DNA of 64,000 nucleotides, taken from contig NC_059427.1 in assembly GCF_021028975.2 (NCBI RefSeq), forward strand, positions 128,898,001 to 128,962,000. Direction: 5' to 3'. Positions 5,884-38,946 of the stretch are shown here, piece by piece. This stretch comes from Sphaerodactylus townsendi (lineage: Eukaryota). The notes under the pieces were generated by a model that was given only the letters and a program-made list of their open reading frames with translations, searched no databases and was not told the DNA's origin. A program made the position numbers and the translations under genes. Each line of letters opens with the position of its first letter. Position 1 is the stretch's first letter.

Positions 5884-7502
5884 CTTGTAGCCCCTGTCTT
5901 GTTGCTGCCATTTCCTTCAGAACGCAGGGGGTCTTTCCCCTTTACAGGTGAATTCTTTGGTGGAAATGAGCAAAGGCAGTTTTCAGTTTTGTGGACGCCA
6001 AACGTTGAGAACGTTGTGGACCTCCAAATGTTGAGTCCCTGAGCTTGGTTCATTTGGAACCAAGGAAAGTGTAAGGACCAGCCCTAGCCCCCCTACATCT
6101 CGCTTGGACAACAAGGCAACAGCGCTACCCTGCCTTTGGGAAGCATCAGGGCAAATCATTTTTTTCTGAGTCCTTCAATGCCTACAGCACCTGCTTCTTC
6201 CCCCCATCCTGGCAGTCCACTCTTTCCTTCCACCTAAACACAAGGATGCACAAATGGGAGTCACTGAGCCTTCATCGAACCTTCCTGTAAAATAAGACTG
6301 TTTCTTGCATGCCAGATATTAATCTCTCTTGTGTGGTGAATAAATGCAATGCAAAAGCCCTGTCCAAGAAAATAAGACAAGAGACAGAGAATCTGAACTG
6401 CTGTCTGTGGGCCCTGGTATTTCACAGCTATTGTGTTGAAAAGGGGCAGAGCTCTTGAACTGCCTTTCAAATGTTCTTTTATTCCTAATGTCTAGAGTTG
6501 ATCCAAGCTTGCCCGAAGTCATACTCTGCATAGGGTGCTGAACGCCCCCCCCCCCCCCCGAACTAGTGCAGAATGGGCCCAGTTTCTACCAAAACAGCTA
6601 CATTTTTTCTACAGAGATCATCAAGAAGGCAAACAGTGAACTTGCAGAGTACAATAGGTCACTGGTTGCTCCCCTTCACACTACAAAAAAACCAAACATC
6701 CCACCTTATTCAACTTCTGACTTGGCAAGCCTGATAAAGAGGAACCTCAGAAACTAAAGATAATGCAAAACTTGAGTCCTAACAAGGAAAAGAGGGGATT
6801 AGTAGCAAGGGAAATGATTGGTCAAAGTATGGGTGTACTGCTCTGAGCTCACACGCATCTGTCCCGTGGCCAAAACCTATAGCCCAGGGAGGACTTGGGA
6901 CTTTGCTGGCTGTAGCTTCCCCAGTGCCATGTACAGAACATGTCATCTAGCAATGATCAGCAAGGAAAGTCTACATCTCTGGTCAGCAACTATTTATTTT
7001 ATTTCAGAGAATGTATGCTACCTTTCAACCAACTTAAGATCTGCTGGAGGGACCTTCTGAGAATGGGGTAATTTGGGAAGCTGACCGACCTCCCTAAACC
7101 CACAGAGTCTGCCAAAAAGTCCATGGCCAAAATGCCTACTCTTTCTTGAACTCTTTTTCTCTCTGTAGACTGGCACTCTGTAGACTCAGTATATAACCAA
7201 AAGATTCCGTGTCATGGCCCACGGTCCAGATTTGGCTTGAGGGCCTCCAGTTTTTGACCTAGTATATAACAAAAGCATGGTTTTAGAACAGCTTGGTGTA
7301 GGTTTGATAGAAGAAACTGTAGAGGTAGGGCTACCACCCACAGCCTGTAGATATAAAGATCCATCCTAGCCACATTTTTTGCCCCTTACTATTGGTCAAC
7401 TTTTCCTCACATCTTACAAGAAGCATTTCTGAGAACCATTGCATAACAAAACTATCCCTGTCACCTCTAACCACTGAGTCGTTTCCCAACATACTCTAGT
7501 AC

Positions 7503-8431
7503 CTTCTGACTCTCGAGATGATAAGGAAAGGGCCACCACGCTGCAGATACTCAAGCTGGCAGGAGACAGTGCAGATGGAAGGGTCCCAGGGGCGTCCTCC
7601 AACTTCTCAGTATCTGGGATGTTATTGTCCAAGTCAACAGCATAAATGTCAGAGTGAGTGCTGTAATACATGCGGCTTCCTCCGCTGCATGCTGCACACA
7701 GGACAGGCCCCTGCAGGTAATATTCTCGGAGCTCTGGGACCTTGACTTCTTTCCCCTGTGCTGCCTTGATGGCCACCATTTTCCCATAGTGTCCAAGAGC
7801 CACTACACAGTCACATCCTAAATCCCCAAAGGCAGGCAGCTCTTCGGCATCTGGGGACTTTCGCTCTGTCCTCAAGGCTCCAATGAAGACAACTGGCTCT
7901 TCCAAATGATGAAGGATCTTGATGGGTGAATCTTCACAGTGGCGGTTGTCAGGAGAACTCAGGGACTTCAGAGGCACAGAACACAACTGTCCATCTGGGA
8001 AGCCACAGAGGATCATGGGTGAATCCAGCATGGCAGCATCAACGCCAAAGAGGAGGCTGAAGAGGGGCTCCTCCAGAATGAATCCCCCTGAGTGGCGAAG
8101 GCCCTCTTTGGAGCCACTGGTGCCAGGAGAAGATGCGCAACACAGCACCGGAAGAAAGTGAGCTAGGGACACGTCCCCATCATTGCTTGTGCAGGTGGTG
8201 ATGTCCACATGGCTGATTGGTTGACGTGGCAAGTTCTCCTGGTCCTCAGGGCTTGGGAGCTTGTGGAGATTCATGCACCACTTCCCTTGTACTTGGGAGA
8301 GGGTGACGAGGACATCGTTGAGCAGTGTGAAGGTGCAAAGCGTGGCATCGGGGAAAGTGCAGGCACTGGACCCCATGGGGAGGACGGTGGAGAAGCAGTC
8401 ATTTTCCTCTCCATCTGTCTGCTTCACTAAC
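7503..8431 (-). CDS. FAAP100: FAAP100 coding exon 3 (large exon)
   Basis: Covers most of ORF 7414..8427 (LFSLLFGVDAAMLDSPMILCGFPDGQLC, ILHHLEEPVVFIGALRTE). Acceptor gctttgaag, donor G|GTACTA; 929 nt, phases 2/1 fit the neighbours. Confidence 0.95.
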
Positions 8432-8889
8432 CTTCAAAGCAAACAAGGAAAAGCTTTCAATAGAGCCAGAGGGGAAAGTGTGGTGGAGGGGGAGTAAAAA
8501 AAATGAGTGTTTAGCATCTGCTTCATGGAGCTGAATTCAAGAGCAGTGAGCTGGATAATGCAGAAGGAGACTCTGGAGGGAGGACCCAGTGACTTAACCC
8601 TTTTGGTGCCCTATAAACTCCAGAGCATCACTTTAAAGGCTTAGAAACCAGACAGCAGTGACAGAGGGGCAAAGTCTGCCGAGTGCATTGCTGGTGGTCT
8701 TCAAGAGAATAAAAGATCAGTGCTACACACTCAGCCTTGCAATTACACCCACAAAACCTATTAATCTACATTTTTTAAATTACTAGCTCCTCTGGCCACA
8801 TAACCTATATCCATATGGAAAACTGAAACGCTTTTCCCGTTTCTAAAACTTCCCTGCCTGACAGACGTGATGCAATTCTTACTCAGTGT

Positions 8890-12899: not shown

Positions 12900-15651
12900 C
12901 TAGGAAGAAAACAAGCACAGTGAAGAGGACTGGGAAGGGAGAGAAGGCCCTCTTCAGTAGAACCTTGAGGGGTAGAATTAAATAGGGGAATTGTGAATTA
13001 CCTCTGAAACACTATCCCCTCATCTACACAACTATACTTCATGAAGGCCAAGTATATGAACACATACCCAGGGCTGGTTATTAACGGAGTGAACAGGGCC
13101 TGTCATCATTTTCCTTAAAGTGACCTCTCTGGGAAAGATGCCAATAGGATAGGATATGTTTGGCTTTCATACATATATGCTCCTGTCCTATACACAGGGA
13201 TCATCCATAGGACGGCTCTGCTCCTGTGCCTTCAACAGCAGCCTGACATGTAGAAATGGAACAGATGAAGCGTCACCTGCTTCACAGATAATGGAACAGG
13301 ATAAAACTTCACCTGCCCTATTTCTGTAAGTCAGGCTATTGTTAAAAGGCACAAGAACAGGGCCAGGACAAAGCTGGCAATGCCAATTACCAAGATAATA
13401 TGCAATTTGGTTTAACATAAAAATAAAGGATATAATATCTTGGGAATAGCTCCCCCTGAATACTACAGTCACATGGAGTAGAAAGAAATGAGTTCCAAAT
13501 GAGCATCTGTTACCCCCACCCCCCCACCCCCGTCTTCTCTCCTGCCCACATTAGGTCTGGCCAGACAAAGCATCCCTCAGTCAGCTACTATATTCAGTGG
13601 TGTGCAGTCAAAATCTACAATGTCTGTACATATTCTGATTTAAATGTTTGCCATGGTCATAAAACCTATTGATCTAGTTTTTTTCCTCTTCATTATCTGA
13701 GGATGTACAACTTCTGTTATAGGGTATTTCAGTAAAGGTCTGTTAGAAAAGCATGTCTCACAATAAGTAGAGATTTTTAGATATGAGACAAAATTCATTT
13801 TAAAAGCTCTTAACCAGTGCCTCTGCTGTCATTCTGTGCTGATGAACAAATGACATATTTTACTCAAGATGGGGTTTCATTTCATCACTGAGGGAACAAG
13901 CAATAGCCCACATGGCTGTCTGCAGCAATTCAAAGTGTTAACCCATTTGTGACCTACTTCTCTGGATGAGGTAAAAGTGTAGGAGGTTGAGCCAGATATT
14001 ACCATAATGGGTTCCTTAGAAACAATCAAGGGAATAAATTAAAGATACATTTATAACACAGTGCTAAGGTTTGTCATGAGCCTAGCAAACAATGCAGGAA
14101 AAATGGCAGTCATACAAAAGCCACCAACATTTAGCTTCAGTCAGGAAAAAGAATTTCAATTCTTCTTCAGGGAACAGGGAACAGAAAAACACACATTTTA
14201 AAAGATTTGTCAAAAGTGTCAGAAGTGAGATGTCAAAAAAACTCACAAATAAGATGTTAAAAATTAGATGCCGCATCTAAGTGGATTAGAAAGCACAGGT
14301 AAGATAACTACTCTGCTATAAAAGGGTGCATTGAGAAGTCATTAGAGCACCTGCTTAAAGATTTACAGTGTAATTGCATGCAGATTTATTCCAACCAAAG
14401 CTCAATAAGATCAATAGGTTTAGACTGGAGTAATTCTCCATCACACTGTTAGATGGCTAATCTCAGGTCTCACACATTTGTCAGCATTCCCTGCTGGCTT
14501 TTCATGAAACAAGCTATACCAAAATCACAGGTTGTGTGCTGGGTTGAAGTTGCCAACATAGAGCACACAAGCATTCCTGCAGAACTGAGCCCAGCATTAT
14601 CACCCCAGAAAATAGAGGGAGGGGGCCACCTATGATACTCCAATGCCACAGCCATGGTACATACAAGTGGGCTTATGGGAAGGAAGATGAAAAGGCAACA
14701 CAAATCACACAGAACCCATCACTCTATAACCACTTATGCAAGCCCTGATACAGGATCTCTGTGCCACTGGAAAGCTTGCAATGTTACCCCCCTCCCCCGC
14801 CAACAACCCATTAATCATAGAATTAATGAGCTGATCCACATTCCAATGTGCCGCACTTAGTGATATGCTAAAGTCCTATTTTATCAGCAGTAGAGTGCTT
14901 TGTGTGCCGGCTCCCTTTCCCTTTACACAATATAAGGTGTCTGCAGGCATGGGGCTTTTTCTAATGATCCTCTATGCAATGTGTATCTTCCCCCCTTCCC
15001 CCCTTAGTACATGGGGGATGGGAGGTCAGAGTTCCATTTGTTCCATGACAATTTATACACGTATGCAGATTTTTCAATTTCAAAATACTGTACTGAAAAC
15101 AAAGCCTTTTAGGACTGCTGCTAGTGACAGGTGTACAGAAATACAGTACACGGTCTCCTGTACATGCACAAAAGCAGCTAGGAGCCGTTAACAGCCCCTC
15201 ACTCTGGAAGGACACAGCTATAAAATCTGCCATAGCGACAGCTGGGAATCTGAGTTACTAGGAGAGACTAAGCACATGCTGAAGCGCAGTTACCCCCTAA
15301 CCACTCTAGGATGCATAATACTGTACTCACAATTGGGATGCTTGTAAGGTGGATTTTTCATCATAGCTGGTGATGAGAAACTAGGTTTAGCAAGTAAAAG
15401 CACAAAAGCACAAATGAACTGACACAGTGCACAAATATGGATTCATATGTATGTGCTGTTAAAGGGGAAATCAGACTACTAAGGGTCTTGGACCATCTGC
15501 CCAGCCTTTCTCCTTGGATGCCACTGTGAAGATCCCAGAAGCAGCTCACAGCATCTGACCTACTTTCCAGGGCCTCCACAATTCCCCTGCGAACGACAAG
15601 ACGTCAGCTGGACCAACCTAGACCCGGCTGGGGCAGCCATGTACCACTTAC

Positions 15652-15816
15652 CTTCATTAGCCGCCCTTCTTGATCATAGATGTAGACATACTCCGTGCCA
15701 TTGGAGAGGTAGATCTGGTTCTCGTGGCACAGCACCCTCGGCTTCCCAGCTGCCAGCCCCCCCACCGGGCAGCAGAATCCTGCCAGGTAATCCACCCTGT
15801 GCCCCACTTGTGCCAT
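15652..15816 (-). CDS. FAAP100: FAAP100 (Fanconi anemia core complex-associated protein 100), first coding exon
   Basis: ATG at 15816 gives MAQVGHRVDYLAGFCCPVGGLAAGKPRVLCHENQIYLSNGTEYVYIYDQEGRLMK, matching the FAAP100 N-terminus (YLAGFCCP.GGLAAGKPRVLCH). Acceptor ttcctttccag before 15832; donor AAG|GTAAGT; 165 nt, phase 0. Confidence 0.95.
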
Positions 15817-15849
15817 GATCCCTGGTGCCAATCTGGAAAGGAAACCAAA

Positions 15850-16620
15850 CAGAGATGCAGACATGGGCTGTGTGTGGGAGGGGGGGAGGTGGTGCGGGTC
15901 CGCCCTGGGGCGACTGTCTCCCCACTAGCGTGAGAAAAGAGCGAAAGGGTTGCAAAAAGAACGCAGGGACCCTCCCCCCTCCCTCCATAAACGCCCCTCC
16001 CCTCACACAGAGCAGCCTTCTCAGCGCCCCCACCTGTGCGATTCTACCCCACACCGACGTGGGCTGCCCGTTCCCAGGAAGGACGGCACTAAAAAGGGCA
16101 ACAAAGAGGAGGGAGGGAAAGGCACCGCCCCCCCATGTGCCCCCGCCCCAGAAAAGGAAGGCGACTCCCCTCGGGGCAGGAAGAGAAAGTCCGTAAGGCG
16201 GCAGCATGGGGAACTCAGCTGCCAACTCCCTCCTCACCACAAAGGGGCGGGACTACAGTTCTGACCACGCCTTTTCTGCCTCGCGGCGTCGCTAATTAAC
16301 GGAGCGGGCGGCGCTTCCTCCCCGCTTTACGGCTCCCTCGCTCTCGCAGATGAGGTCTACGCGCGGCAGAAGAAGCGGGCTGGGCGGACGTGGGTTTACG
16401 ACACGTCGTAAAACGGAGTGGAGAAGGCGGGGAGGAGTGTGCAGCGGTTTCTGACATATTGCTGCGGGGGGAGGATAGAGGTCTTTGCACGCTAGAAGGA
16501 CTTCGGGATGGGGGTGGGGGGAAGGACCCCGTTATGAGGTCCAGGGAAGAACTCGGGGTGCTTCCGCCGGCCACTATAGATTACTCCAGACCTGTAAAAG
16601 GCAGCTTGGTTGGGCGACTG
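15850..16620. promoter_or_regulatory. CpG island promoter of FAAP100 with a probable non-coding exon 1 ending at about 16238
   Basis: High GC and CpG density. GC box and ZNF143-like GGGCGGGACTACAGTT at about 16245-16260. Minus-strand donor TG|GTGAGG at 16238/16237 lies upstream of the acceptor at 15832. Confidence 0.75.
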
Positions 16621-22199: not shown

Positions 22200-22205
22200 T
22201 TTATT
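22200..22205 (-). terminator. Candidate poly(A) signal of the secreted-protein gene
   Basis: AATAAA on the minus strand about 150 nt after the stop; a second AATAAA at 21974-21969. Confidence 0.5.
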
Positions 22206-22351: not shown

Positions 22352-22610
22352 TTAGTTGCCATCTGTCAGAGGCTCTCTGAGCTTCTTCCCATCCCGGATC
22401 AGGATTCTCCGTCGTTTGGCTGGCAAGGGCACAGTCTCTGGTTGGATGACTCTGATGGGAGTCTTTGCGGGAGTCTTCCCCTGTCCTTTATTAATCTCAT
22501 CCACAAAAGACTCCACTCCTTCAAAACGTGTAGTCAGTTCTCCAAGACGTTCTTTGAGGGCATTGAATTCTTTGTACAGGTCATCAAGGGCATCAGAAAG
22601 GGGTTTGATC
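22352..22610 (-). CDS. Uncharacterised secreted coiled-coil protein, coding exon 3 (coiled coil, basic tail, stop)
   Basis: Acceptor ctctctcttactctttag, phase 2. Encodes IKPLSDALDDLYKEFNALKERLGELTTRFEGVESFVDEINKG...KRRRILIRDGKKLREPLTDGN*, the 3' part of ORF 22352..22762. Total CDS 489 nt. Confidence 0.87.
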
Positions 22611-22878
22611 CTAAAGAGTAAGAGAGAGAGAATGATGAGTTGGAGGTATACAAAAGACTCTATAGCAGGCTTGCACCTCAGATAATGCCTAGAAGCAAAG
22701 AATATAACCTTTATTACAACCACTACTATATCAGGGAGAAGCCTCACAGCTGAAGCCAACATCTTCCCAGTTATCAGTAGATGTCCTGTTGGGACCCCAG
22801 TACTTGCAGAAAGGCTACTAAAAATTAGATTCTTGATTGTTCACTGAAAATGGAGCTTTAGGCACAGTGCACATACAC

Positions 22879-23077
22879 CAGCAGTTCTCAACCTATGGGT
22901 CGCGACCCCTTTGGGGGGTCGAACAACCCTTTCACAGGGGTCGCCTAGGACCATTAGAAAACACATATTTCCGATGGTCTTAGGAACCGAGACACAAATA
23001 ATTTTATGGTTGGGAGTCACCACAACATGAGGAACTGTATTAAAGGGTCGTGGCATTAGGAAGGTTGAGAACCACTG
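22879..23077. mobile_element. Non-autonomous SPIN (Space Invader, hAT) element
   Basis: cagcagttctcaacct...gggtcgcgacccctttggggg...caccacaacatgaggaactgtattaaagggtcg...aggttgagaaccactg matches the SPIN_NA/URR1 consensus as recalled; lies in the last intron of the secreted-protein gene. Confidence 0.85.
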
Positions 23078-23099
23078 ACACACTGATCAAGACATAATT

Positions 23100-23205
23100 T
23101 ACCTGCCTCTGATGAAGTGGAATTTAAAACCACAAAAGTTGTTATCTTGAAGGTGCCATAAGATTCCTTTCTGTTTTTACTGCAACAGACTAACACAGCT
23201 ACCTT
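23100..23205 (+). mobile_element. Penelope-like element terminal fragment
   Basis: ctgatgaagtgg...ccac(a)aaag...aaggtgcca...ctgcaacagactaacacagctacc. Confidence 0.6.
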
Positions 23206-23240
23206 CAATCACACCAGAAGTCCGCTAACCCCTAACTCAC

Positions 23241-23370
23241 CTTCCATAGTCAGGTAACACAGTCTGGTGATCATAGAGAAGGAGATTCTTGATTTGAGTC
23301 GTGATAGCAAACTTCCAGTTGTCCAGGACAACAGTAAGATTGGCACATCCTTTCATGTTGACTTTGTTAG
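23241..23370 (-). CDS. Uncharacterised secreted coiled-coil protein, coding exon 2
   Basis: Acceptor attttatctag, donor AG|GTGAGT; 130 nt, phases 1/2. Open frame (A)[42 protein letters not shown](R). Confidence 0.87.
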
Positions 23371-24483
23371 CTAGATAAAATAGGATATAAAATCAAGTCG
23401 TAACATCAAAGAATACAGCCCCTTCCCTACAGACTCATTTCTGGACTTGGGTATTTTCCCACCATTTATATTAGACAATAATTGTAATTATAATAATTTG
23501 TCAAGCAAAGGGCACATTTATGAAATCCACCGTAAAACATATGAAATCAAAATAAACTAGGCCTATAAAGTATATGCTAAAGATTTGTGGCCCGTCTTAG
23601 AAGGATTTAAGATGGGCAAAAAGTTTACAAGAACAAAATTATGATGTAATGCCAAACACATACATACTGGGAAAATCTAATAATGGAACCATATTTTTAA
23701 AGGCAAAACTGGGTGTTGCAAAAGTATGGGCAATGGAGAGTTCAGATCTCCTATATTTTGAGCATTTCTTTCTAGGTTATCTCCTCAAAACAGGATGCAC
23801 CTGGCCTCCTAAAAATATATTGTGGAAACCTGGTTACACGTCATGAGGATGAATATTTTGAGTTGAAATCTATTAAAAAGATTATTAAAAGTTATAAAAA
23901 AGTTTATCTGGCCTTGGACGGAGCTCATCACTTAAACAGCTTCTCATTTCAAGCCCTGAGGATGAATAAATTTGGTGGTAGATAACTTCTTGTTCTACAG
24001 TTATAAGGAAGTGTGAACTTATTATTTTAGAAGTGTGCCGATGGGGTGCCAGATGTCACCAGTTCTTGTGAAAAGTAGCCACTGACTTAATGTGAAAGCT
24101 AAACTTACCCTTTTGACTACCAGATGATGCAGAATAAGTATGGGACTCAATACACATGCAGCTGTCAGTATTGTCTCCTATGTCTAGTAGTGGCTTGCTA
24201 GGGCTCTCAGGTTGAAGTTTTTCAAATCGCCTACTACCTAAATCTTTTAACTGGAAACTCCAGGGGTTGAATTTGTGACCTTCTGCATGCAAAACACTGC
24301 TCTAGCAGTGAACTCCGTGAATCTCGGACACTTAGCTAAGGTATCGAGATCTGAACAAAATGATCTAACTTGCCCAGCAGCCACCAAGCATTCTGTTTTA
24401 TCTCTCCCGCCAACCCAATAAAAAAACGTCCTGAGTTGCCTAAATTGCTTCCTAGGGGGACGTACAAACAAGTGGCACATTAC

Positions 24484-24583
24484 CTTCAGATCTGTAGTCC
24501 CATTCAGAGGTTGTCTGCTGCCGCTTTGGCTTGACAGAACAGCTGAGTGCCACGAAAAACAACAGGGAAAGAATCTGCCTCAT
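24484..24583 (-). CDS. Uncharacterised secreted coiled-coil protein (162 aa), coding exon 1 (signal peptide)
   Basis: Acceptor cttatcatcccacaaag| at 24588, then Kozak gcaccATG. Encodes MRQILSLLFFVALSCSVKPKRQQTTSEWDYRSE. Donor G|GTAATG; 100 nt, phase 1. Confidence 0.85.
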
Positions 24584-26023
24584 GGTGCCTTTGTGGGATG
24601 ATAAGAAAGCCATTTATGAGTTTCCCCCTCCCCCTGTACTCTTCCCACAGCATAGCAGAAAGGGCAGTTTCTTGCGCCTCAACCCCCCCCCCCCCCATCC
24701 CTTGGCAGCTCCAAACAGCACTCCTTCAACTGAGAAGCTGAAGGATATCAACTTCATATCACAATGGAATTAGACAAGGGGGAGGGGGGGGAACTCTCTA
24801 GAGAAAGAGGGGTTGTGCAATCCCAGCCGTAGCTCTTGCAGTATTTCATTCTGAAGTGTTTATCCATGGGACAAATCCGAGCAAGTCTTTGCCTGTTATG
24901 CTGTTTGGTACAGTGGTCTGAACTACTTGCGAGGGAACCTGGATCCTGTACATTAATACAAGATTCCCTTCAGATTACCTCCTCGTCTCCATTGATACAA
25001 ATATTCAGAATTTACCCACATAAAGGTATTAACATTTTGATGGGGTGGTTTGCATTTGACCCAGCCCGTGAAGCATTCACAGCTACAAAGGCAGGAAACA
25101 TAGAACATATCAATTCTTGTATCTATAAACTGGCAATTACAGCTCAACAAACAAAAGGAGACCAGCCAGATGTACAGCCCAGATGTGCCAAAACCAGGCT
25201 GGTCTAAGCTTATGGGTATCTGCCTTTGTTAGTCTGCAGCTGAAAGATCAACCCCAGCTTCAAAATATACACTGAAATCACTTGTGCATCCTTAATTCTG
25301 CTTGCACCGGGTACTTCAACCAGAATGTGGCCCATTTGTACCATGCTTTTGAAGTTAAGAGTGACCCACCATCATTTTTGAACGTATGAAACAGAACTGT
25401 CATTCCTCACGGTAGGAGACATTCGTCTCTGTGCAGCAGTCAGCTCTATTCTTGCCTATAATCTCATACTAATGGTACCGATGAGGGGATAAACAGAGCT
25501 AATTCTACATTTGCCTCCACGATCTCATGACTCAGGGACCTGTGCACATCCCTGATCCAAGCTTTGTGAGTTCTCCATCTTACAGACATCAGGTTGGATC
25601 TTGCAGATCCATTCCTCCCATGTCAAGGAGACTTTCCACTGAAGTAGGACTGCCAGAAAAGTCTTTGTCAGGGGAAGGTTCCTTGAACCAGGAGAAAGCA
25701 CTGCTGTAAGTGGGATGGATCTGTGGAAATCAACATCACCTCAGAACTACAGGAGAAACAAGAACCTAGGGGCTCCAATAACACACAGAAGACACACTTC
25801 AAGATGATCCATTTTTTAAAAAAAAGGAAGTGCAAATTTGTCAATGGAATCCCTGCAAAACCTGTATAACAAACAGGACCTCACAAACATTGCAGAACTT
25901 TGGAAATGAGTTCTTCTGCACCCAAGCCTATTCAAATGTCAACAGTTTTTTAGAACATCATTTGGAGACTGCAAAAAAGAGGGGTTATTCAAAAGAATGA
26001 AGCCCAAAACATTGTTTTCCTAC

Positions 26024-26125
26024 CTGCTGAGTAGAAATCCTGGGGAGGCAAGATGGATCAGTTCTTTCAAGTCGGCTTTTCTCCCCTCTCTGGCCAGGAT
26101 TGGCTTCTCTTCTGCACCTTATAAC
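26024..26125 (-). promoter_or_regulatory. Putative TATA box and non-coding first exon of the secreted-protein gene
   Basis: Minus-strand TATAA at 26123-26119, then an ATG-free stretch ending at donor CAG|GTAGGA (26024/26023), upstream of the acceptor at 24588. Confidence 0.5.
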
Positions 26126-29100
26126 ATGCTGCTCTGGAATTCGGCCAAACCACACAGCAGCCTTCTAATTGCAAACAGATCCGTTTGGCCTGCAGAGAGG
26201 TCTCCAAACTGTGACTTGTATGGCTCTTTAGGGAAAACAAACCCACCCCCCCTTTTTAAAAAAAGGATGTCTGCAGGACAGCAAGGCAGAATAACTCTTC
26301 AGGTTGCAGGCACTTGGGCGAAGAAAAGGGTCCTCTTCCCTTTGGCTCACAAAAGAGCTTTGCAATCCAATCCAACTTGCATAACTTGGGGCAGAATCAC
26401 ACCCCCCCCCACCCCGAAGTCATTGTTATTTTAAGGCTAAAGGGGGAAAGTGTTTTCCTTTGGAGAGGAGATTTAGTAGGGGAGAAGAAGCTCTGATTTT
26501 CCTGGGATGCTTGCCTTGTGGAGATGCGGAACCCCACCCCAGTTTCCACATAAAGGGTTTCCTCAAGACCTACAAGTTGGTTTGATGTGCAAAATTTCTT
26601 TTTGCCAACCCTTGGTCATTCAAGTGGCAGGCCAAGGACTAGCAGGATCAATATGATTGGTACAAGACCCACATACTAGCCGGACTCTTCCTTGCAGCCT
26701 TTGCCCACCAGTGCTAAATCAATGGTAGAGAAACTGGGCAAGACTTTTAAGCACAGTAAAAGTTTTAATCTCAGACTAAGTTCCAAAAATAGGCAAATAG
26801 CAGCAAACATGAAATATGAATTTAAAAGAAAATATATATTGGTTTGTAACTTGCTGGGGCTTTCAAAGGCACGCATGGGGCAGACAGAGGAGTGGCTTGG
26901 TTTTGATTTTGTGGCATGCGAATGGACACGATCTACCAATACTTTACTGTTCTGCTATACTTGATCTTAGCCAAAAGACCAAGAAGTAACTATCCAATGC
27001 CATCTTTATCCCAAGTTCCACTCCACTCCCAAAATCTATTTTCTCTGAAGCTGCATATTTTAGATCCTAATGGCCAATACTGGGTTGCCGGTTTCCCTCA
27101 GAGGAAGGAATTGCGTAATCTGTTCTTCATGCCATTTCATTCCTGGCCAAGTGGCAGTTCCACAATAGCTAGGCCTTGCCGACCTCACCAGTTTTGCCTA
27201 TCTAAGCTCAAGCTTTATAAAACTTTTAATTAAGGATCTTGTAATACGTTGTCCAAGAAAGTAAGTTCTGAATACCGGTAAACCACATCCCTGACTGGGC
27301 TTGGCAATGGATTTTACAGATAAAAAGGTTGATGTAAGATTTCCCTCAAAGACAGTCCACACAGCTAGGAAATCATCTCTCACACACATAAGGACTTGGT
27401 ATGAAAACCTCCATGTTGTAAGGGCGCCAAAGTTTCATAGGAACCTTCAAGGTGTCTGCTTATGGAATTCTCTCCACTTCAGCATCATCTTAGTGTGGTT
27501 TCCAAAGCCATAACAAGCTGCATCAAACTCCACTTAATTACTGGTGCAGTTTTAAGGAGTTTTTAGCTATTCCCTGAACAGCACAATTCACAGAGAAGCT
27601 AAATTTATCAGTGTCAGTGCACCAGCTGTGGTCTTTAGGAAGCCATTAGTTGGCTATCTCATCACCCACTCGGCAACAACTGGAGTCTGGGTCTTTTCCA
27701 ACATGGCACCCATGGAATGGACTCCATGAAGAGGTGAAGGAAGCCCTCAGGAGCTGCTGCAAGGCTTGCTTATTTGCCAGGACTGGGGGGGGGGGGTCGA
27801 ATTGGCAGGTATCATTTAAGAGGGGGGAAAAAGATCTGGGCTTTGTTATTTCATTTTGGTTTTAACTGGAAATGTATTTTAACTATTATCACAAGCTGCC
27901 TGGACCCTGGAGAAAAAGCACAGTATAAATGCTTTAATAAACAATTAATACATTTATGCACTTGATTTAAAATAACCACTAATCCGGCTCGCAACCAGCA
28001 GTTTTAAGCCTAAACTTCTTCAGTCTATTTTGTTCCTTGTCATTTCTACTCTCAAATTATACTGCAAAATCACAGTCTGCCTATTTTGCAGGCTTGTGCA
28101 GATGGCAAGAAGGAAGGCAGCATGACATAGCCTAATGTCATCAGATCTCGGAAGCTACAACAGGACTAGCACTTCGATGAGGGACCACCAAGGAAGACCC
28201 TGCAGAGGGAGGCAATGACGAAACACCTCTACCCTCCACTTCCCTTGAAAGCGCCTTGCTTTAAGTCGGTTGTGGCGTGATAGCACATATGCATGTATGT
28301 ATGGCAGATTATAAAACTAGATCACATTGTTTCGTCCCTTTGTCATACGGCTCTTTATATCTGAAAATCACCATCACCAGAAGGCACAGTGGCAAGACGC
28401 CATTATTTTTAAATTGAAATACAAGAAGTGTCAAGCGACAGTTTGCTTTTGATCGAAGTACCCAAACTGAAAGGGTCCCAAAGTGTGCACATGCCATCCT
28501 ACGCGGTTTAGGAAACACAATTTAGTCAGCCAGCTTTCACAACTGTGCAAATATTATTTTAAATCGTTCAGCCAAAGTTGTGATGCTTTCCTGGCCTGTA
28601 CCATTTCAGGTTACCCACTACCAGTTGCACATGGTCACCAATGGGGAGAAACTCCCACCAGGTATAAAATTTATGTCAGAAAGCTACACTGAACCCATCT
28701 CCTGTGCATGCCAGTTTTATGTGCACGGGGAGATTTGCTTTAAAATGGCATGCTAATATGTAATTCTTTCCCGGCTGTAACAAGAAGTGAAACTGGCCAA
28801 GAAAAGGGCCATGACTTGATTACGTGGTACATATAAACAGATTATGTGAGGAAACAGTATTCCTCCTTGCTTGTCAATGCTACAGAGCCAAATAAATTGA
28901 TGTAGAACAGATTACTTCAATGTTTCCTTTGAAAAGCTGTCTTGATCTATTTTACAGTTCGCAGATTGAACCCTGAAAAACATATGGCTGAAATATGAGG
29001 GATGCAAGAGAGAACAACAAAAAATCTTTCCTGTCCCACATTCAGCATTAGCATAAAGGTAGTTATATATGAAACCCGATATGAATGACTGGTCCACCTT

Positions 29101-32210: not shown

Positions 32211-32368
32211 TTAGCTGCGTGGGAGGCTGCACATCTCACAATGATCTGTGCCTGGCTGGTTCATGAAGGTGCAGTGCTGGCAGGCCCACATGGAAGAGGT
32301 TGCGGCATGTGTCGAGCTACCCATGGCGCCATATTCTTGGAGTCCTGGCAGCTGAACGCCAACAGTGC
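32211..32368 (-). CDS. NPLOC4: NPLOC4 last coding exon (RanBP2-type NZF zinc finger, stop)
   Basis: TVGVQLPGLQEYGAMGSSTHAATSSMWACQHCTFMNQPGTDHCEMCSLPRS*; carries the W-x-C-x2-C-T-F-x-N-x6-C-x2-C motif. Confidence 0.97.
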
Positions 32369-33086
32369 CTGCAAAAAATCACACAAAGCAGAGAGGAGAA
32401 GGTTAAAAAGACAACAGCAGATTCGACAAGCAGGGGATTCTCATGCGGGATCACTGCAGAATGTCTCTGTAGGGCCTTCCCCACCTATCAGGGACTTCAG
32501 GGCCTTCTCCACCTATCAGGGAAAATCTCCTTCCTTTGCAAAGTCTCTGCACAGCTGTGTGAATCCCCCCAAATGTAGTCACTATTATCATTCATGGAGT
32601 ATCTTCACTTGATTGTCTGCTCTAGATCAGCCCATTTAGACCTACTTGAATCAACGCAACAAGAGTGCTTCAGAATTTTTTTTAAAAATCTGTTCTGAGG
32701 AAAATGTCCATTGCATATGTTAGTATGTTACAGCCAAAAGAAAAGGAATCTTGTGTCACCTTAAAGCTTAACAGTGTTATGGTCTCATAAGCTGTCATGG
32801 GCTAAAGAGCTGACTACAGCAAGGTCAGCCCCCCCCCGCCCCCCCCGCCTGCTTCCAGCCCACAAAAACATCTGTTACATCAGATGTCAAGGTGCTAAAA
32901 GCCCTCTTTTGTAGTAGAAAAGTATACTAGTTTTCCCCCACATAATCTATTCCAAGTCATCAAAGGAGGTTAGAATCCATCTCCAACACTGGGCTACCTC
33001 ATATGAAAAAATTAAAGCTCTCTAGCCTTTCTGCAGCAAAATGGTTAAATTTCAGTGTCAAAAAAGGGTGCAAACACAAGACATAC

Positions 33087-33189
33087 TGCAAAGCTGTTCA
33101 ATGGTGGCCCACTGCTCCGATTTTTTCCAAGTCTGTGCCAGCTCCTCATTCCGGGTCCTTACTGCTTCCAGTAACAAGCTGATGCTATC
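33087..33189 (-). CDS. NPLOC4: NPLOC4 penultimate exon
   Basis: DSISLLLEAVRTRNEELAQTWKKSEQWATIEQLC(S); ctttcag / GTATGT; 103 nt. Confidence 0.96.
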
Positions 33190-33644
33190 CTGAAAGAAGA
33201 TAATATTAATTATGGTGTGATCTGTTTATGATGTGAGAGGCAGCGGGCCGCACTCTGGAAAAATCCCTTTGTTCCAAAGCTGTTCTGCTACATACTGAGT
33301 TGGTAATAACAGTTCCCAGCCTTTTCACCTGGCTCTGCTCTATACCCCACACTGTCCCATTCTGTTTTTAAAACCAAGATGGAAATGCCCTGCACTTCAG
33401 TTTCCACTCTCAAATTCAGCATCATGTTATATGTCCATGAAGTGCATTCCATCTCCCTGCTTGCTAAAAGAGTCAGTAACCCAACAAAACAAGACAACAG
33501 TGAGTTGTATCCACCTACTGTTTCCAACAGTGAAATAATGTGAAGTGCTATGATGGCTGCATGAACGACTCTCCACCCAGCTGCCTCAAAGGACAGATGG
33601 CCAGAGCCCAGCCCCATGAACATCATCAGTATTTATGTCTGTGT

Positions 33645-33929
33645 AGAAGAAGAAGAGTTTGGATTTATATCCCACCTTTCAGGAGACTCAAGGTGGCCTA
33701 CAAGCTCCTTTTCCTTCCCCTCCCCATAACAGACACCATGTGATGTAGGTGGGGCTGAGAGAGTTCTGAGCCCATTGAGCCCAAGGTCACCCAACAGGAA
33801 TGCAGGAGTGTGGAAACACATCTGGTTCACCAGATAAGCCTCTGCCACTCAGGTGGAGGAGTGGGGAATCAAACCCGGTTCTCCAGATTACAATCCACCT
33901 GCTCTTAACCACAACACCTCGCTGGCTCT
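33645..33929 (-). mobile_element. tRNA-derived squamate SINE
   Basis: Reverse head gtgtt/agtggttaagagc...ctggagaaccgggtttgattcccc and (TCT)n tail; another copy at about 62873-63142 (+), fragment at about 18740-18925. Confidence 0.8.
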
Positions 33930-34239
33930 AGAGGATGGGTAGCATGTATTTCTTCAAATAGTCAAAACAAGCACGATAACTGTGGACAGGAGTGAATAGC
34001 TGGCAGCAGCTAGGAAGCTGCAATTGTACCCTCCCAGCTCATTCACTTGTCTGTAATGGTTACTATTCACTTATTTGTAATTTTTATTTCCCACAAAGAA
34101 GGGGCAAAATAGCCAAGATACAAAAAAAAATGACTTTGCCAAAGGCAGCAACTTGTACTCCAAACAGCAGAGGGTGCTAGAGGTTAGTTCTACTGAATGG
34201 AAACCTGCAGACAGTTTACTCCTGGGCCCCCGAATGCAT

Positions 34240-34871
34240 TTGTTACAAGGGCCGGATATGACATAAATGTGACTTGGTCGGGCCAGGGCTGGTGGGGGGG
34301 GGGGGGAATGTGGTTACCTTGGCTGTGAAGCCCACAGCAGGCTCACCAGCCCACATCAGCACTGACAGTGATGGTCAGCACTGGGGGGTGTGTGTGTGTG
34401 CCTCAATGGGTGAGCCCCCAGCAGCCTCACCAGCCTAGATCAGCATGGGGGAGAATGTGTGTGGCTGCCTCACCTGGTGAGACTGCATTAGGGGTGGGAT
34501 GGCGACCATAGCTGGAGGGTCATCTTGGCTGGCAAGTCCACAGTGGGCTCACCAGTCCAGAATGGCACTAGGTGAGGTAGCTGGCACTGGGAGGGGTGGC
34601 TGCCTGCAGGTTCACCAGCCCAGATTGGCACAGGAGGGTGGCTCGCCAGGACAGATTGGGAGTGGGGAGGGTGCTTAGACTGGTTAGACCACAAAGGACT
34701 TGCCAGGCCAGATCAGGAACAGGATGAGGTAGATGCCTTGACTAGCCAGCCCACAGTTGGCTTGCCAATCCAGATCAAGAACAAAGGGGGGCTGCCTCAG
34801 CTGGCTCACAGGGCTGATAAGCTCTGTTAAGGGGCCAGCTCCAGCTCCCTGGCCACACGTTTGACACCCCT
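34240..34871. mobile_element. Truncated hAT-like element with internal ~60-bp tandem units
   Basis: Right TIR gtttgacacccctg and repeated ggctcaccagcc(c)agatcagca units. Confidence 0.55.
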
Positions 34872-35784
34872 GGTCTACTCTATCCCACAGATCTGGGGTA
34901 TATACATGCATGTGACCACCCATCTTTTACCCTCAGAAGATATAAGACATAAAAATGGGAAATGCATGACCTTTCTCTTAGTTTCATAACCTGTTCTTTT
35001 ACTCTACTCTCTCCCTTGCCCACACACAAACTTAAACTGGGGGAGGGGAGAGAGAGAGAGAGAGAAATGGTAAGCCAAAATAAGCAACAGGGCAATAAAT
35101 AGCTAATTTGATTGGCCCTGATCTCCAGTTGTCCACTAGCCGCCCAGCTGTTCAGCACATGCTTGGTGTGTTCCATTTTTTGCAAGCTTCTGGAAAACAT
35201 ATGGCCTGAGCTTCTTTTGCTTGCTTTTTTTAAACTGGGAAAAATACTGATGTTATAATCAGAGCCTCGTGTGCAGCCAGACTCTAGCTGCCAGGCCTAT
35301 AAAAATGGGTGGGAGCATGGGCGACGATGCAAATACAAGAAGCCTTAGTAAGGCTGGGTGACTGATACCGCAGTCATTTATTACACCAATTTCTGATTCA
35401 GAGGAGTTTAAAACATTTCCAGTTGTTGAGGCAGCACTCAAGGTGGCTCCAGCTACTTTGAGAACATCCTGATGCAAACGCTACACTCACTGCTCCAAAC
35501 TATGCAAAAGCTGTGCCTGCCAAACCTCAACCCCATTGAGCATCTCCACTATCAATCTTGAAGATTGAAGAACTTCAAAAGCAAGGCAACCTCTGATGTC
35601 TGAGGCAGGGCTTTTGTCAAACAAACTGAAATTAGGTATGGACTGAAACACAAATAGCCACCCCACCAAGCAGGCAGGATGCTCTGGTTGGAGACCGGAG
35701 AACAATTCGGCACCTTTCTGTACAAAGCCCTTCTTGCAAGTTCTCCTAACAGCCTCCAGAATAGCTTTCTTTGCATATACATAC

Positions 35785-35901
35785 CCTTAAAGGCATGACT
35801 TCGTTGGTGACCAAGAAGAGGAGCAGATGGAAATCGGAGATTATGTCAAGGAACACAGATGAGGTGTTCTGGGATAAATATGTAGCCAGACTGTGAAAGT
35901 C
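35785..35901 (-). CDS. NPLOC4: NPLOC4 internal exon
   Basis: DFHSLATYLSQNTSSVFLDIISDFHLLLFLVTNEVMPLR; tttacag / GTATGT; 117 nt. Confidence 0.96.
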
Positions 35902-36639
35902 CTGTAAAGATTGTAAACAGGATAAATTGCTAACTATTATTATTTTATTTAAATAAAGCAAACCAGGCAAATTCTGTCATAAAGTTTACCACTGTAAGAA
36001 TTTTAACAGAAGAATTTTTCCTATAAATTTATACAAAAGTCCCACAATCACATAAACTACTATCAACTGGCTAATTTCAAATATTTGGCTATCCTTCCAA
36101 ACATGCATTAGCCGATCAGAGATAGACAAAATGGACTTAGATTGCCAGTGAGCAGCTATACATAAACCATTTTTCTAAAGGATCAACATTATTTTCCAAA
36201 AAAGCAGTACCCCAAAAATAGGAACTTTAAGAAATTTAGGAATGATATATTCTTTCCAATCCAAAATCTATCTTAAGATTGCCTGCCTGAATGCAGGGTC
36301 ATAACCAAAAATAAGAAGTATTATCTACTGGGAATTCCATCTCTACCATATATTCAGAAGCATATGTAGTAAAGTATCAAGGTGATATGATCTTGAAGAC
36401 ATTCTCCTTTGGACTGGATGAAATAAAACTAAATGGGACATTTACCCAAAGTCAGTTCCACACATTGAATACAATGATTAATAATACAATTTAATATGAA
36501 TGTTAATAACAACATTTAACAACATGTAAAATTGTTCCAGTTTTCAATTAAATGTACATGAGTTTTCTTTCTCTAAAAGGAGAGCATAAAAACTGTCATA
36601 TTATCTTTGGCAACACAACATTACTTTACAAGGTGTGTA

Positions 36640-37381
36640 TAATCATAACATAACATTAGTAATCATGGTCATAACATAACATAATAGAGGCATCAGTAAA
36701 TGCAAGTCTGCCCTGGTTGAGCTGAGACTGCAGTAGAAGAGGGGGAAAGTCATTGTGCTTTCACCTCCATATTCTGCAAGCTTGGCCTGGGCTGAGTCAT
36801 AATTTTGATATCAGTCCATATAAAAGGTGCTTAATCTGAAAATCATAAACAAAGGGTAATCTAAAACAATCACTAGCCAAACTGTTTTCTTACTGCTCCA
36901 TATTCTTATGATCTCTAACAAGATTTGTGACACTCACATTAGCCCAGCAAACTTTGCCACACTATACAAAGAACAAGCAGATATACATCAGATGACCCCA
37001 GGTCACTGTCAATTAATTTCTCAGAAAAAGTATTCAACGCCTTTCCTGCTATTCCATGGTTTATGTGGCCACAAAGCCACCACAGAGAGCCGTGAGCAGG
37101 AGAGCTCTACTCTCCAAGGGGAAGGGGGGGGAGATATTGAAAAGATATGAAAAACAGCATCAGAATTCTTAGTACAAAGTAAGAACAAATGACTAGTGTC
37201 TTCTGACTTTTGCCAGCTGCCAATATCAGCCCAGGCCAAGCTTGCAGAATATGGAGGGGAAAGCACAATGACTTCCCCCCTCTTCTACTGCAGTCTCAGC
37301 TCAACCAGGGCAGACTTGCATTTACTGATGCCTCTATTATGTTATGTTATGACCATGATTACTAATGTTATGTTATGATTA
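36640..37381. repeat. Near-perfect inverted repeat, 156-bp arms (36640-36795 and 37226-37381)
   Basis: The arms are reverse complements with about 2 mismatches; 430-bp spacer. Confidence 0.92.
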
Positions 37382-38394
37382 CTGATGCTTTTGTTGTCAT
37401 AATGCTGTGTTTAAAAGGCAACGCTCATTGTTGCTTAGAATATGTCATAATGTTATGTTTATTGATTCTATGTTATTGATGTTATGTTTTGATTATTGTT
37501 ATTTAATGCTACGATTATTGATATTGTCACTTTGCAGCTGTTGTTCACCGCCCTGAGCCCTTCAGGAGGGCAGCATATAAATCTAATAAACCAAACCAAG
37601 CCTGCATTTCCTTTTTGTAAACAAGCCACACTCTTTAGGTTTGACAGCAATCAGCAAAAGGAAAGCACAAAAAAACTGAAGAGTCTGCAGAAGGTTTGCT
37701 TTTGTGGGCATCTAGCTCAGCATCTCAAACTTTTAAATATCTGGCCAAAAACAGATGCTCCAGGAGAGGTCATAAGAGCAGTTATGGACAGAGCGACCAC
37801 TTATCACTTGCACAGTTCCTGACCTGAAGTTTAAGGACATCTTGAGTACAGACTGTATCTCTAGTTACTTTCCACGCTTGCAAGAGTTGCCAGGGTAACT
37901 GGAGTGAAAAGCAGAGCTAGGGATAAATTGTTGCTAAAACAAGTAGCTCATCAACAACTCCACAGGCACAGGGAGCTGGAGCTCAGATCCAAGCAGTAAC
38001 GGCAAACTCAAAAGGCAAGCTAGACTTGGCTTTCTTCCTACACACTCTGCACCCCCACAAGTCTCCAAGTCTACTACAGTCATATCGTAAGCATCTTCTT
38101 GTTTTAGCAGTGGTACACGGATGTGAACTGAAGAAACAAACAGATGTGTATAAATGTGTGTACATGGGGAAGGGATATTACTAGGACCTTCACACACACA
38201 CACAATTCCTACGACTTGCATTCAAATTCAAATGAGGGTATTTACAACAGTTCTTCCTTTTGGTGCATTTGAATGATGATTAAGAGCAGCTTCTCTCCAC
38301 TGAACCCCTCCCTACCAACAAAGGTGGCGAGAAAACAAACTCAAAATAAGTTATATTCTTCTTATATACTTCTTATATAAAGAAGTAACACACT

Positions 38395-38531
38395 TCTCTC
38401 TGTGATAAAACTCTGAAGATGCCAGCCACAGATGCAGGCGGAACGTTAGGAACAAGATCTACCAGACTATGACCACACAGCCCGGAAAACCCACTACAAT
38501 CAGTTGAGTCCGGCCATGAAAGCCTTCAACA
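38395..38531 (+). mobile_element. Penelope-like element fragment with a degenerate hammerhead ribozyme
   Basis: ctctgaagatgccagccacagatgcaggcggaacgttagga...cacacagcccggaaaacccac...tccggccatgaaagccttcaacaat. Confidence 0.75.
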
Positions 38532-38562
38532 ATGCAAGAAAAGAAGTTACATCAGTCACTTA

Positions 38563-38703
38563 GGCCCCTTCCGCATACGCAAAATAATTCGTTTTCAAAC
38601 CACTTTCACAACTGTTTGCAAGTGGATTTTGCCATTCTGCACAGCTTCAAAGAGCATGGAAAGCAGTTTGAAAGTGCATTATTCTGCATGTGCGGAATGA
38701 GCC
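38563..38703. mobile_element. PIF/Harbinger-like MITE
   Basis: TIR ggccccttccgcat / tgcggaatgagcc, TTA duplication. Confidence 0.75.
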
Positions 38704-38850
38704 TTAGCTTTTCAACTGTTTATCCCTTTTTTGGTACAATTCCCTATATAATTGAGAAGGGGAGATACCGGTATGTTCTATTAATTAATTAAGAAAAGAA
38801 AAGAAGTTTCATTATGTAGGGTTGTTGATCCTCTCCCTTCAACCTCTTAC

Positions 38851-38946
38851 CTGCGTTTCTCCCAGTACATCACGATTCTCAATAGGGAATGGATTTTGAG
38901 AAATAGAAAATGTATAAACTGGATCCTTAGGGAACGTGGTAGTAAT
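38851..38946 (-). CDS. NPLOC4: NPLOC4 internal exon
   Basis: ITTTFPKDPVYTFSISQNPFPIENRDVLGETQ; ttttaag / GTAAGA; 96 nt. Confidence 0.96.

Follow-up and report, generated by a model that had tools for sequence, protein, structure and literature searches.

The window considered here is a stretch of 64,000 nucleotides (nt) of the gecko Sphaerodactylus townsendi (contig NC_059427.1, positions 128,898,001 to 128,962,000 of assembly GCF_021028975.2), and all positions below are counted from its first letter. In the interval between NPLOC4 and FAAP100 it carries, on the minus strand, three exons which are confirmed as a real protein-coding gene for a small protein (Table 1). A preliminary description of the locus had assembled this model from canonical AG/GT borders, with exons of 100+130+259 nt joining into 162 amino acids (aa), and the borders, the phases and a deposited protein all bear it out. 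The exon translations match residues 1-33, 35-76 and 78-162 of UniProt entry A0ACB8ELR8 (S. townsendi, 162 aa, "Uncharacterized protein") residue for residue, and the assembled model is identical to this entry; the split codons G/CT and AG/G (the slash marks the exon border) encode Ala and Arg, and the phases are compatible across all three exons. The start codon stands in the context gcaccATG, the donor GTAATG directly follows 24484 (GT at 24483-24482), exon 2 is flanked by ...TTTTATCTAG before 23370 and by GTGAGT after 23241, and exon 3 is preceded by ...TACTCTTTAG before 22610 and ends with TAA. The Kozak context and the downstream AATAAA that had been pointed out are both present. The gene had also been called hidden. 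This holds for the mechanical list of open reading frames (ORFs), whose sole entry here (22352-22762, 136 aa) has the last exon alone behind a spurious N-terminus, as had been stated, but not for the databases, since the exact model is in UniProt and the orthologues bear NCBI LOC numbers. The gene is thus already known as annotation, while the function, domain model and structure of its family are undescribed.

The predicted splicing is borne out, in a relative at least. An mRNA contig of snake-like sequence assembled in Logan (L001, run SRR6291265; 2597 nt) has an uninterrupted coding sequence at positions 56-559, encoding 167 aa. Its alignment to the window falls into three blocks (24591-24484, 23372-23241 and 22612-22359), and these end at both predicted junctions (contig positions 154-285 fall on 23372-23241, and 284-549 on 22612-22359). 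The junctions put forward initially, 24484/23370 and 23241/22610, are therefore matched by an intronless mRNA, and the turtle, gar and bird proteins break at the same two places, their identity to the gecko protein over exon 2 being 75-89%.

The gene is under purifying selection. The ratio of nonsynonymous to synonymous substitution rates (dN/dS; Nei-Gojobori, summed exon by exon), which had been proposed as a check on the model, is 0.17 when the gene is compared with that of Paroedura picta and 0.21 in the comparison with L001. Across four genomic runs three variants fall in the coding sequence (22412, 22484 and 22523), each of them at a third codon position and synonymous according to a hand count, and about 13 variants fall in the unique intron and flanking sequence.

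Table 1. Features of the NPLOC4-FAAP100 interval and its borders, in minus-strand order.
Feature	Position in window	Strand	Size, content or basis
Further NPLOC4 exons	33.1, 35.8, 38.9 kb	minus	gar NPLOC4 matches spanning 32214-38946
NPLOC4 last coding exon (upstream neighbour)	32214..32395	minus	tblastn of gar NPLOC4 pieces
Promoter-like conserved block	26096..26192	minus	invariant TTATAAGG at 26124-26117
Candidate non-coding exon 1	26024..26094	minus	ends CAG/GTAGGAAAA; donor GT 26023-26022
Candidate 3' splice site (pyrimidine tract + AG)	24589..24612	minus	AG at 24590-24589; directly before gcaccATG
Coding exon 1	24484..24583	minus	100 nt; ATG 24583-24581, predicted signal peptide, basic KPKR stretch, core start EWDYRSE
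Coding exon 2	23241..23370	minus	130 nt, phase 1 in/phase 2 out; Cys42, N44-L-T46 sequon, helix 1 (VLDNWKFAI...LLL), LPDYG turn
Coding exon 3 (last)	22352..22610	minus	259 nt incl. TAA; five-and-a-half-heptad coiled-coil helix, proline-rich variable linker, basic KRRR tail
AATAAA, candidate poly(A) signal	22200..22205	minus	147 nt past stop; from sequence alone
Second AATAAA	21974-21969	minus	378 nt past stop; likewise
FAAP100 first coding exon (downstream neighbour)	15643..15897	minus	tblastn of vulture FAAP100 pieces
Large FAAP100 exons	7498-8433 and 1870-2673	minus	vulture FAAP100 pieces map 15897 down to 176

Regarding the neighbourhood, the placement between FAAP100 and NPLOC4 is established by tblastn mapping of both neighbours to the same strand, and FAAP100 also gives a Pfam FANCAA match at 1864-2667 (E 6e-106); NPL4 Pfam domains are recorded on the NPLOC4 genes of gar, Paroedura and vulture. 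Read along the minus strand, the order is NPLOC4, the gene and FAAP100, and it is identical, strand included, in the king vulture. In Paroedura and in the spotted gar the gene likewise follows NPLOC4, the next gene of the gar being RNF213-like. The same arrangement is found on a second Logan contig (L007, SRR18112698), with an intact orthologue of the gene at 8001-8640. This contig is bird-like, with 65% GC and introns of about 70-90 nt, and its best alignment is with the locus of the vulture, extending into some of the non-coding sequence. Around the shark and Xenopus loci of the family, neighbours were sought within 10 kb and none was found.

Upstream of the coding exons, a promoter and a first exon had been suggested as candidates and, as such, they gain from their conservation between two geckos. 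Between S. townsendi and Paroedura, the promoter-like block is 89% identical across 97 columns, against a background of 67-69%; the block of the candidate exon is about 75% identical in surroundings of 67-69%, and its donor CAG/GTAGGAAAA at 26024/26023 is invariant together with its flanks. Directly before the ATG, a pyrimidine tract followed by AG, equivalent to the one in the window, is present in Paroedura (TTTCTTGTCGTCCCGCAG/aggcatcATG) and in L001. The conserved block, the donor and the tract before the ATG fit a promoter and a non-coding exon 1, which would probably lie about 1.4 kb upstream of the ATG and be spliced to 24588. In blastn comparisons of the promoter block with the vulture, gar, Xenopus and pigeon loci, only chance-level matches were obtained.

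The encoded protein is built from a predicted, cleavable signal peptide (about residues 1-17), a KPKR stretch, an acidic core of about 90 residues, a proline-rich linker and a basic tail (KRRRILIR...). Two amphipathic helices, 39-66 and 81-119, form the core and are joined by an invariant LPDY-x-RI turn. AlphaFold2 (AF2), given alignments of 24 and of 149 sequences, models a signal-peptide helix at 2-16, a helix at 39-66, the turn at the invariant L72-P73-D74-Y75 and a helix at 81-120, in which the block confidence (predicted local distance difference test, pLDDT) reaches 98; the stretch after the signal peptide and the tail are of low confidence. The coiled-coil character noted at the outset is well reflected in this last helix, where each of the 11 a/d positions between residues 81 and 118 is occupied by a hydrophobic residue. 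Constraint is concentrated in the core: mean majority identity is 86% over residues 27-117 but drops to 40% in the linker and to 36-51% in the tail, 41 columns are invariant among 20 sequences from gecko to bichir, and T46, L49, W52, L72, P73 and L102 are invariant across 149 family sequences. The N-terminal segment is strongly hydrophobic in 147 of these 149 members. In every clade described below, at least 90% of the members carry a basic tail (five or more K/R in 10 residues), with a median net charge of +7 to +9.

Homologues were found across vertebrates, as had been anticipated, with E values of 4e-47 and weaker (4e-47 to 1e-12 against named members), and orthologues with NPLOC4 synteny are among them. 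The query of this search was the genuine part of the window ORF at 22355-22762, and later full-length work was done on A0ACB8ELR8 or on alignments that include it. A profile of 20 sequences retrieved 192 clusters at 50% identity and a broader profile 585 proteins; in each search, the best 120-150 matches were examined. A tree of 43 labelled members resolves three clades, with support (Shimodaira-Hasegawa-like approximate likelihood ratio test) of 98 for an NPLOC4-linked clade, 82 for a clade of fishes and coelacanth and 100 for an HEBP1-linked clade. The NPLOC4-linked clade includes sharks, coelacanth, ray-finned fishes (zebrafish si:ch73-127m5.3 and si:dkey-282h22.5), amphibians, turtles, squamates and birds, and the window protein stands in it beside that of Paroedura. 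Only fishes and coelacanth are found in the second clade (si:ch211-76l23.4), while the HEBP1-linked clade comprises sharks, lungfish, ray-finned fishes (si:ch211-243a20.3), amphibians, squamates, turtles, alligator and birds (LOC102086159). Its pigeon member lies 4 kb from a SOUL/HEBP gene. The chicken protein XP_015144850.1, of the same clade, is listed in one source as "heme-binding protein 1 isoform X2", a name apparently taken from the neighbour gene. Nearly all named members are "uncharacterized", "hypothetical" or carry zebrafish clone names, the few others being evident annotation errors.

Judged by full-length similarity, place after NPLOC4, shared junctions and the presence of Cys42 with the N-x-T sequon, the window gene is orthologous to an uncharacterised gene of jawed vertebrates and a plain member of the NPLOC4-linked clade. 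Its orthologues (among them si:ch73-127m5.3 and si:dkey-282h22.5, Paroedura LOC143833021, Xenopus laevis LOC108700980 and Falco LOC129783766) are 57-91% identical to it at the protein level and share its length, three coding exons, place after NPLOC4, predicted signal peptide and basic tail, as well as a G-C-x-N-L-T motif and the heptad helix LSxALxDLYKEFNxLKERLGEL. All 59 NPLOC4-linked members, the window protein included, have the N44-x-T46 sequon as well as Cys42, which is the only mature cysteine of the window protein. The two paralogous clades (si:ch211-76l23.4; si:ch211-243a20.3/LOC102086159) have the two-helix core, predicted signal peptide and basic tail in common with it but, unlike the NPLOC4-linked clade, both lack Cys42, and their genomic neighbourhood differs. 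The HEBP1-linked proteins, 26-36% identical, moreover lack the sequon and have a basic core, with a median net charge of +4 versus -6 in the NPLOC4-linked clade.

The preliminary description could not assign the protein to a named family, and this still holds after searches of Pfam, PDB, Foldseek and ESM Atlas, none of which gave a characterised relative. In Pfam, the exons, the false ORF and 24 family members reached at best 13-15 bits against cut-offs of 27-40 (DUF7310, DUF5798), which is coiled-coil noise. Foldseek against PDB returned no match and no PDB relative, a wide structural search (VIA) gave generic single long helices only (Z at most 5), and ESM Atlas returned only the unnamed chordate clusters of the family itself, its named-only search being empty. 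In the literature library searched, no paper on the gene or its family was found, and no data on function, expression or phenotype either. One sequence match in PDB deserves comment: the family profile hits the neck of DC-SIGNR/CLEC4M (3jqh) with a whole-sequence E value of 4e-7, although no single stretch passes. Both share a heptad motif of the type Y-x-E-x-x-x-L-K-x-x-x-G-E-L (profile positions 82-104, DLYKEFNALKERLGEL), and the CLEC4M neck, as an extracellular oligomerising helix, offers a model for the role proposed below for helix 2. However, the window protein has one heptad helix and, unlike CLEC4M, neither tandem 23-residue repeats, nor a C-type lectin domain (Lectin_C in Pfam), nor a membrane anchor. 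We thus rejected membership in a lectin-neck family, in view of the missing repeats, the absent Lectin_C match and the lack of a single passing stretch; the likeness to DC-SIGNR is likely a resemblance of coiled coils and not homology. A four-helix-bundle cytokine or hormone was likewise rejected, two long helices being predicted, Foldseek being empty and the VIA matches being single helices with Z at most 5.

Taken together, we consider it about 80% probable that the locus holds a working gene of three coding exons, probably with a non-coding exon in addition, for a secreted, oligomeric extracellular ligand or matrix-associated factor. According to this reading, the signal peptide would direct the protein into the secretory pathway, where it may be N-glycosylated at N44 and would oligomerise through the canonical heptad helix; in the NPLOC4-linked clade, an interchain disulfide at Cys42 could lock the oligomer, and the positively charged tail might hold the protein on glycosaminoglycans, on the matrix or on a cell-surface partner. 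The protein would then act as an extracellular ligand or matrix-associated factor. Secreted proteins under such strong constraint usually have a specific partner, and because the core is so constrained, a specific binding partner is likely here as well.

The gene structure, its conservation, purifying selection, synteny and the pattern of the helices are established by the data, while secretion, glycosylation, the oligomeric state, the function of the tail and the biological role are inferred. Several points weigh against this picture. Secretion and oligomerisation are proposed from sequence features, and the S. townsendi runs holding the locus are four genomic DNA runs of one study, whose contigs are contiguous and without splice joints. 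The AF2 monomer has a predicted template modelling score (pTM) of only 0.27-0.31, so that the packing of the helices is not given by the model. The sequence of the tail, for which a binding role is proposed, is itself poorly conserved. Furthermore, because Cys42 is missing from the two other clades, the disulfide cannot be essential to whatever role the family has in common.

Among the other explanations, the one that survives best, although we regard it as rather improbable, is a prohormone-type precursor, in which a convertase would cut after KPKR21 and KRRR145 so that a fragment or a short C-terminal peptide, and not a scaffold, would be the active product. The cut after KPKR21 would leave an N-terminal Gln that could cyclise. 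A dibasic or furin-like motif does stand right after the predicted signal peptide in 40 of 59 NPLOC4-linked and 21 of 22 fish-only members, in many orthologues as K/R-x-K/R-R followed by Q or E, and KRRR is kept in squamates and a turtle. In proalbumin and pro-parathyroid hormone, which are likewise secreted, the signal peptide is followed by a short basic propeptide. Like them, the family considered here shows K/R-x-K/R-R shortly after the predicted signal-peptide cut, then often Gln or Glu; there is no sequence relation to either, however, and cleavage in the family is putative. The motif is missing in about one third of the NPLOC4-linked clade and, as a dibasic site, in 63 of 68 HEBP1-linked members. 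What is strongly conserved, moreover, is the 90-residue helical core and not a short peptide, the segment past KRRR being weakly conserved (36% mean majority identity). Processing and oligomerisation are in any case compatible with each other.

The family is retained in non-mammalian vertebrates, as had been proposed, with sharks, ray-finned fishes, coelacanth, amphibians, turtles, squamates and birds all in the match lists. No mammal is present among the approximately 420 family members retrieved, a count that refers to protein lists made of the best 120-150 matches of each search, mammalian genomes and their NPLOC4-FAAP100 interval not having been scanned. Clone-based and LOC names usually indicate that no human orthologue has been recognised, and the zebrafish members all keep clone-based names and the NCBI orthologues all LOC names. 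This absence and these placeholder names support, but do not prove, a loss of the family in mammals. It is unlikely, in our view, that mammals instead keep an orthologue or paralogue which is too divergent, unannotated or differently named. Such a gene could have escaped lists of the best 120-150 matches, and the divergent, GC-rich bird orthologues already fall outside the best 120 of the 585-protein search. Yet when 10 divergent GC-rich representatives were looked up, eight proved to be clusters of bird proteins and the other two a stickleback cluster and a Logan contig, and the tetrapod matches of the HEBP1-linked clade, with E values of 1e-85 to 1e-33, are all from amphibians, reptiles or birds.

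Still less probable is that the hydrophobic N-terminus serves as a signal anchor that stays uncleaved, or as some other targeting signal, leaving the protein membrane-tethered or intracellular. In favour of this, basic residues follow immediately after the hydrophobic stretch. However, the hydrophobic run is short (about 11-12 residues) and ends in a motif of small residues, S-C-S in the gecko and C-A-A in other squamates, fitting the -3/-1 rule of small residues that signal peptidase sites follow; both the N-x-T sequon, which is invariant, and the single conserved Cys, moreover, make sense in the secretory lumen. Finally, a chance ORF or a pseudogene in decay, in favour of which one may note that the runs covering the locus in S. 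townsendi are genomic DNA and not RNA, is practically ruled out as an explanation of the exons by the intact frame, the dN/dS of 0.17-0.21, borders identical in the spliced mRNA of a relative and hundreds of orthologues in conserved synteny.

As a gene prediction, the locus adds nothing new, the protein being in UniProt and its orthologues annotated in well over a hundred species. Worth recording are a core nearly unchanged from sharks to birds, three ancient paralogues, and the lack of any mammal in the match lists for either of the two tetrapod members. One may speculate, with little confidence, that jawed vertebrates have in these three clades an orphan system of extracellular signalling or of the matrix, whose ligand would be a coiled coil that is locked by a disulfide and binds heparin, and that mammals have lost this system entirely. 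If this were true, neither the NPLOC4-linked nor the HEBP1-linked gene would be left in mammals, and the receptor of the system, or the tissue that it serves, might have gone with them. Given the constraint on its core, the family is worth studying in zebrafish, Xenopus or chick, and it is a candidate marker for biology given up by mammals.

Two minor features of the locus may be added. Within intron 2, positions 22879-23077 belong to a very high-copy interspersed repeat, with a Logan word depth of 10^5 to 10^6, compared with some 20-90 on either side; variant copies and loose ends abound, and it is probably an element resembling a short interspersed nuclear element (SINE). Some 100-200 nt upstream of the ATG, on the minus strand, long homopolymer-like G and C runs occur, namely a G run around 24690-24700 and CCCCCCCCTCCCCC around 24780-24790.

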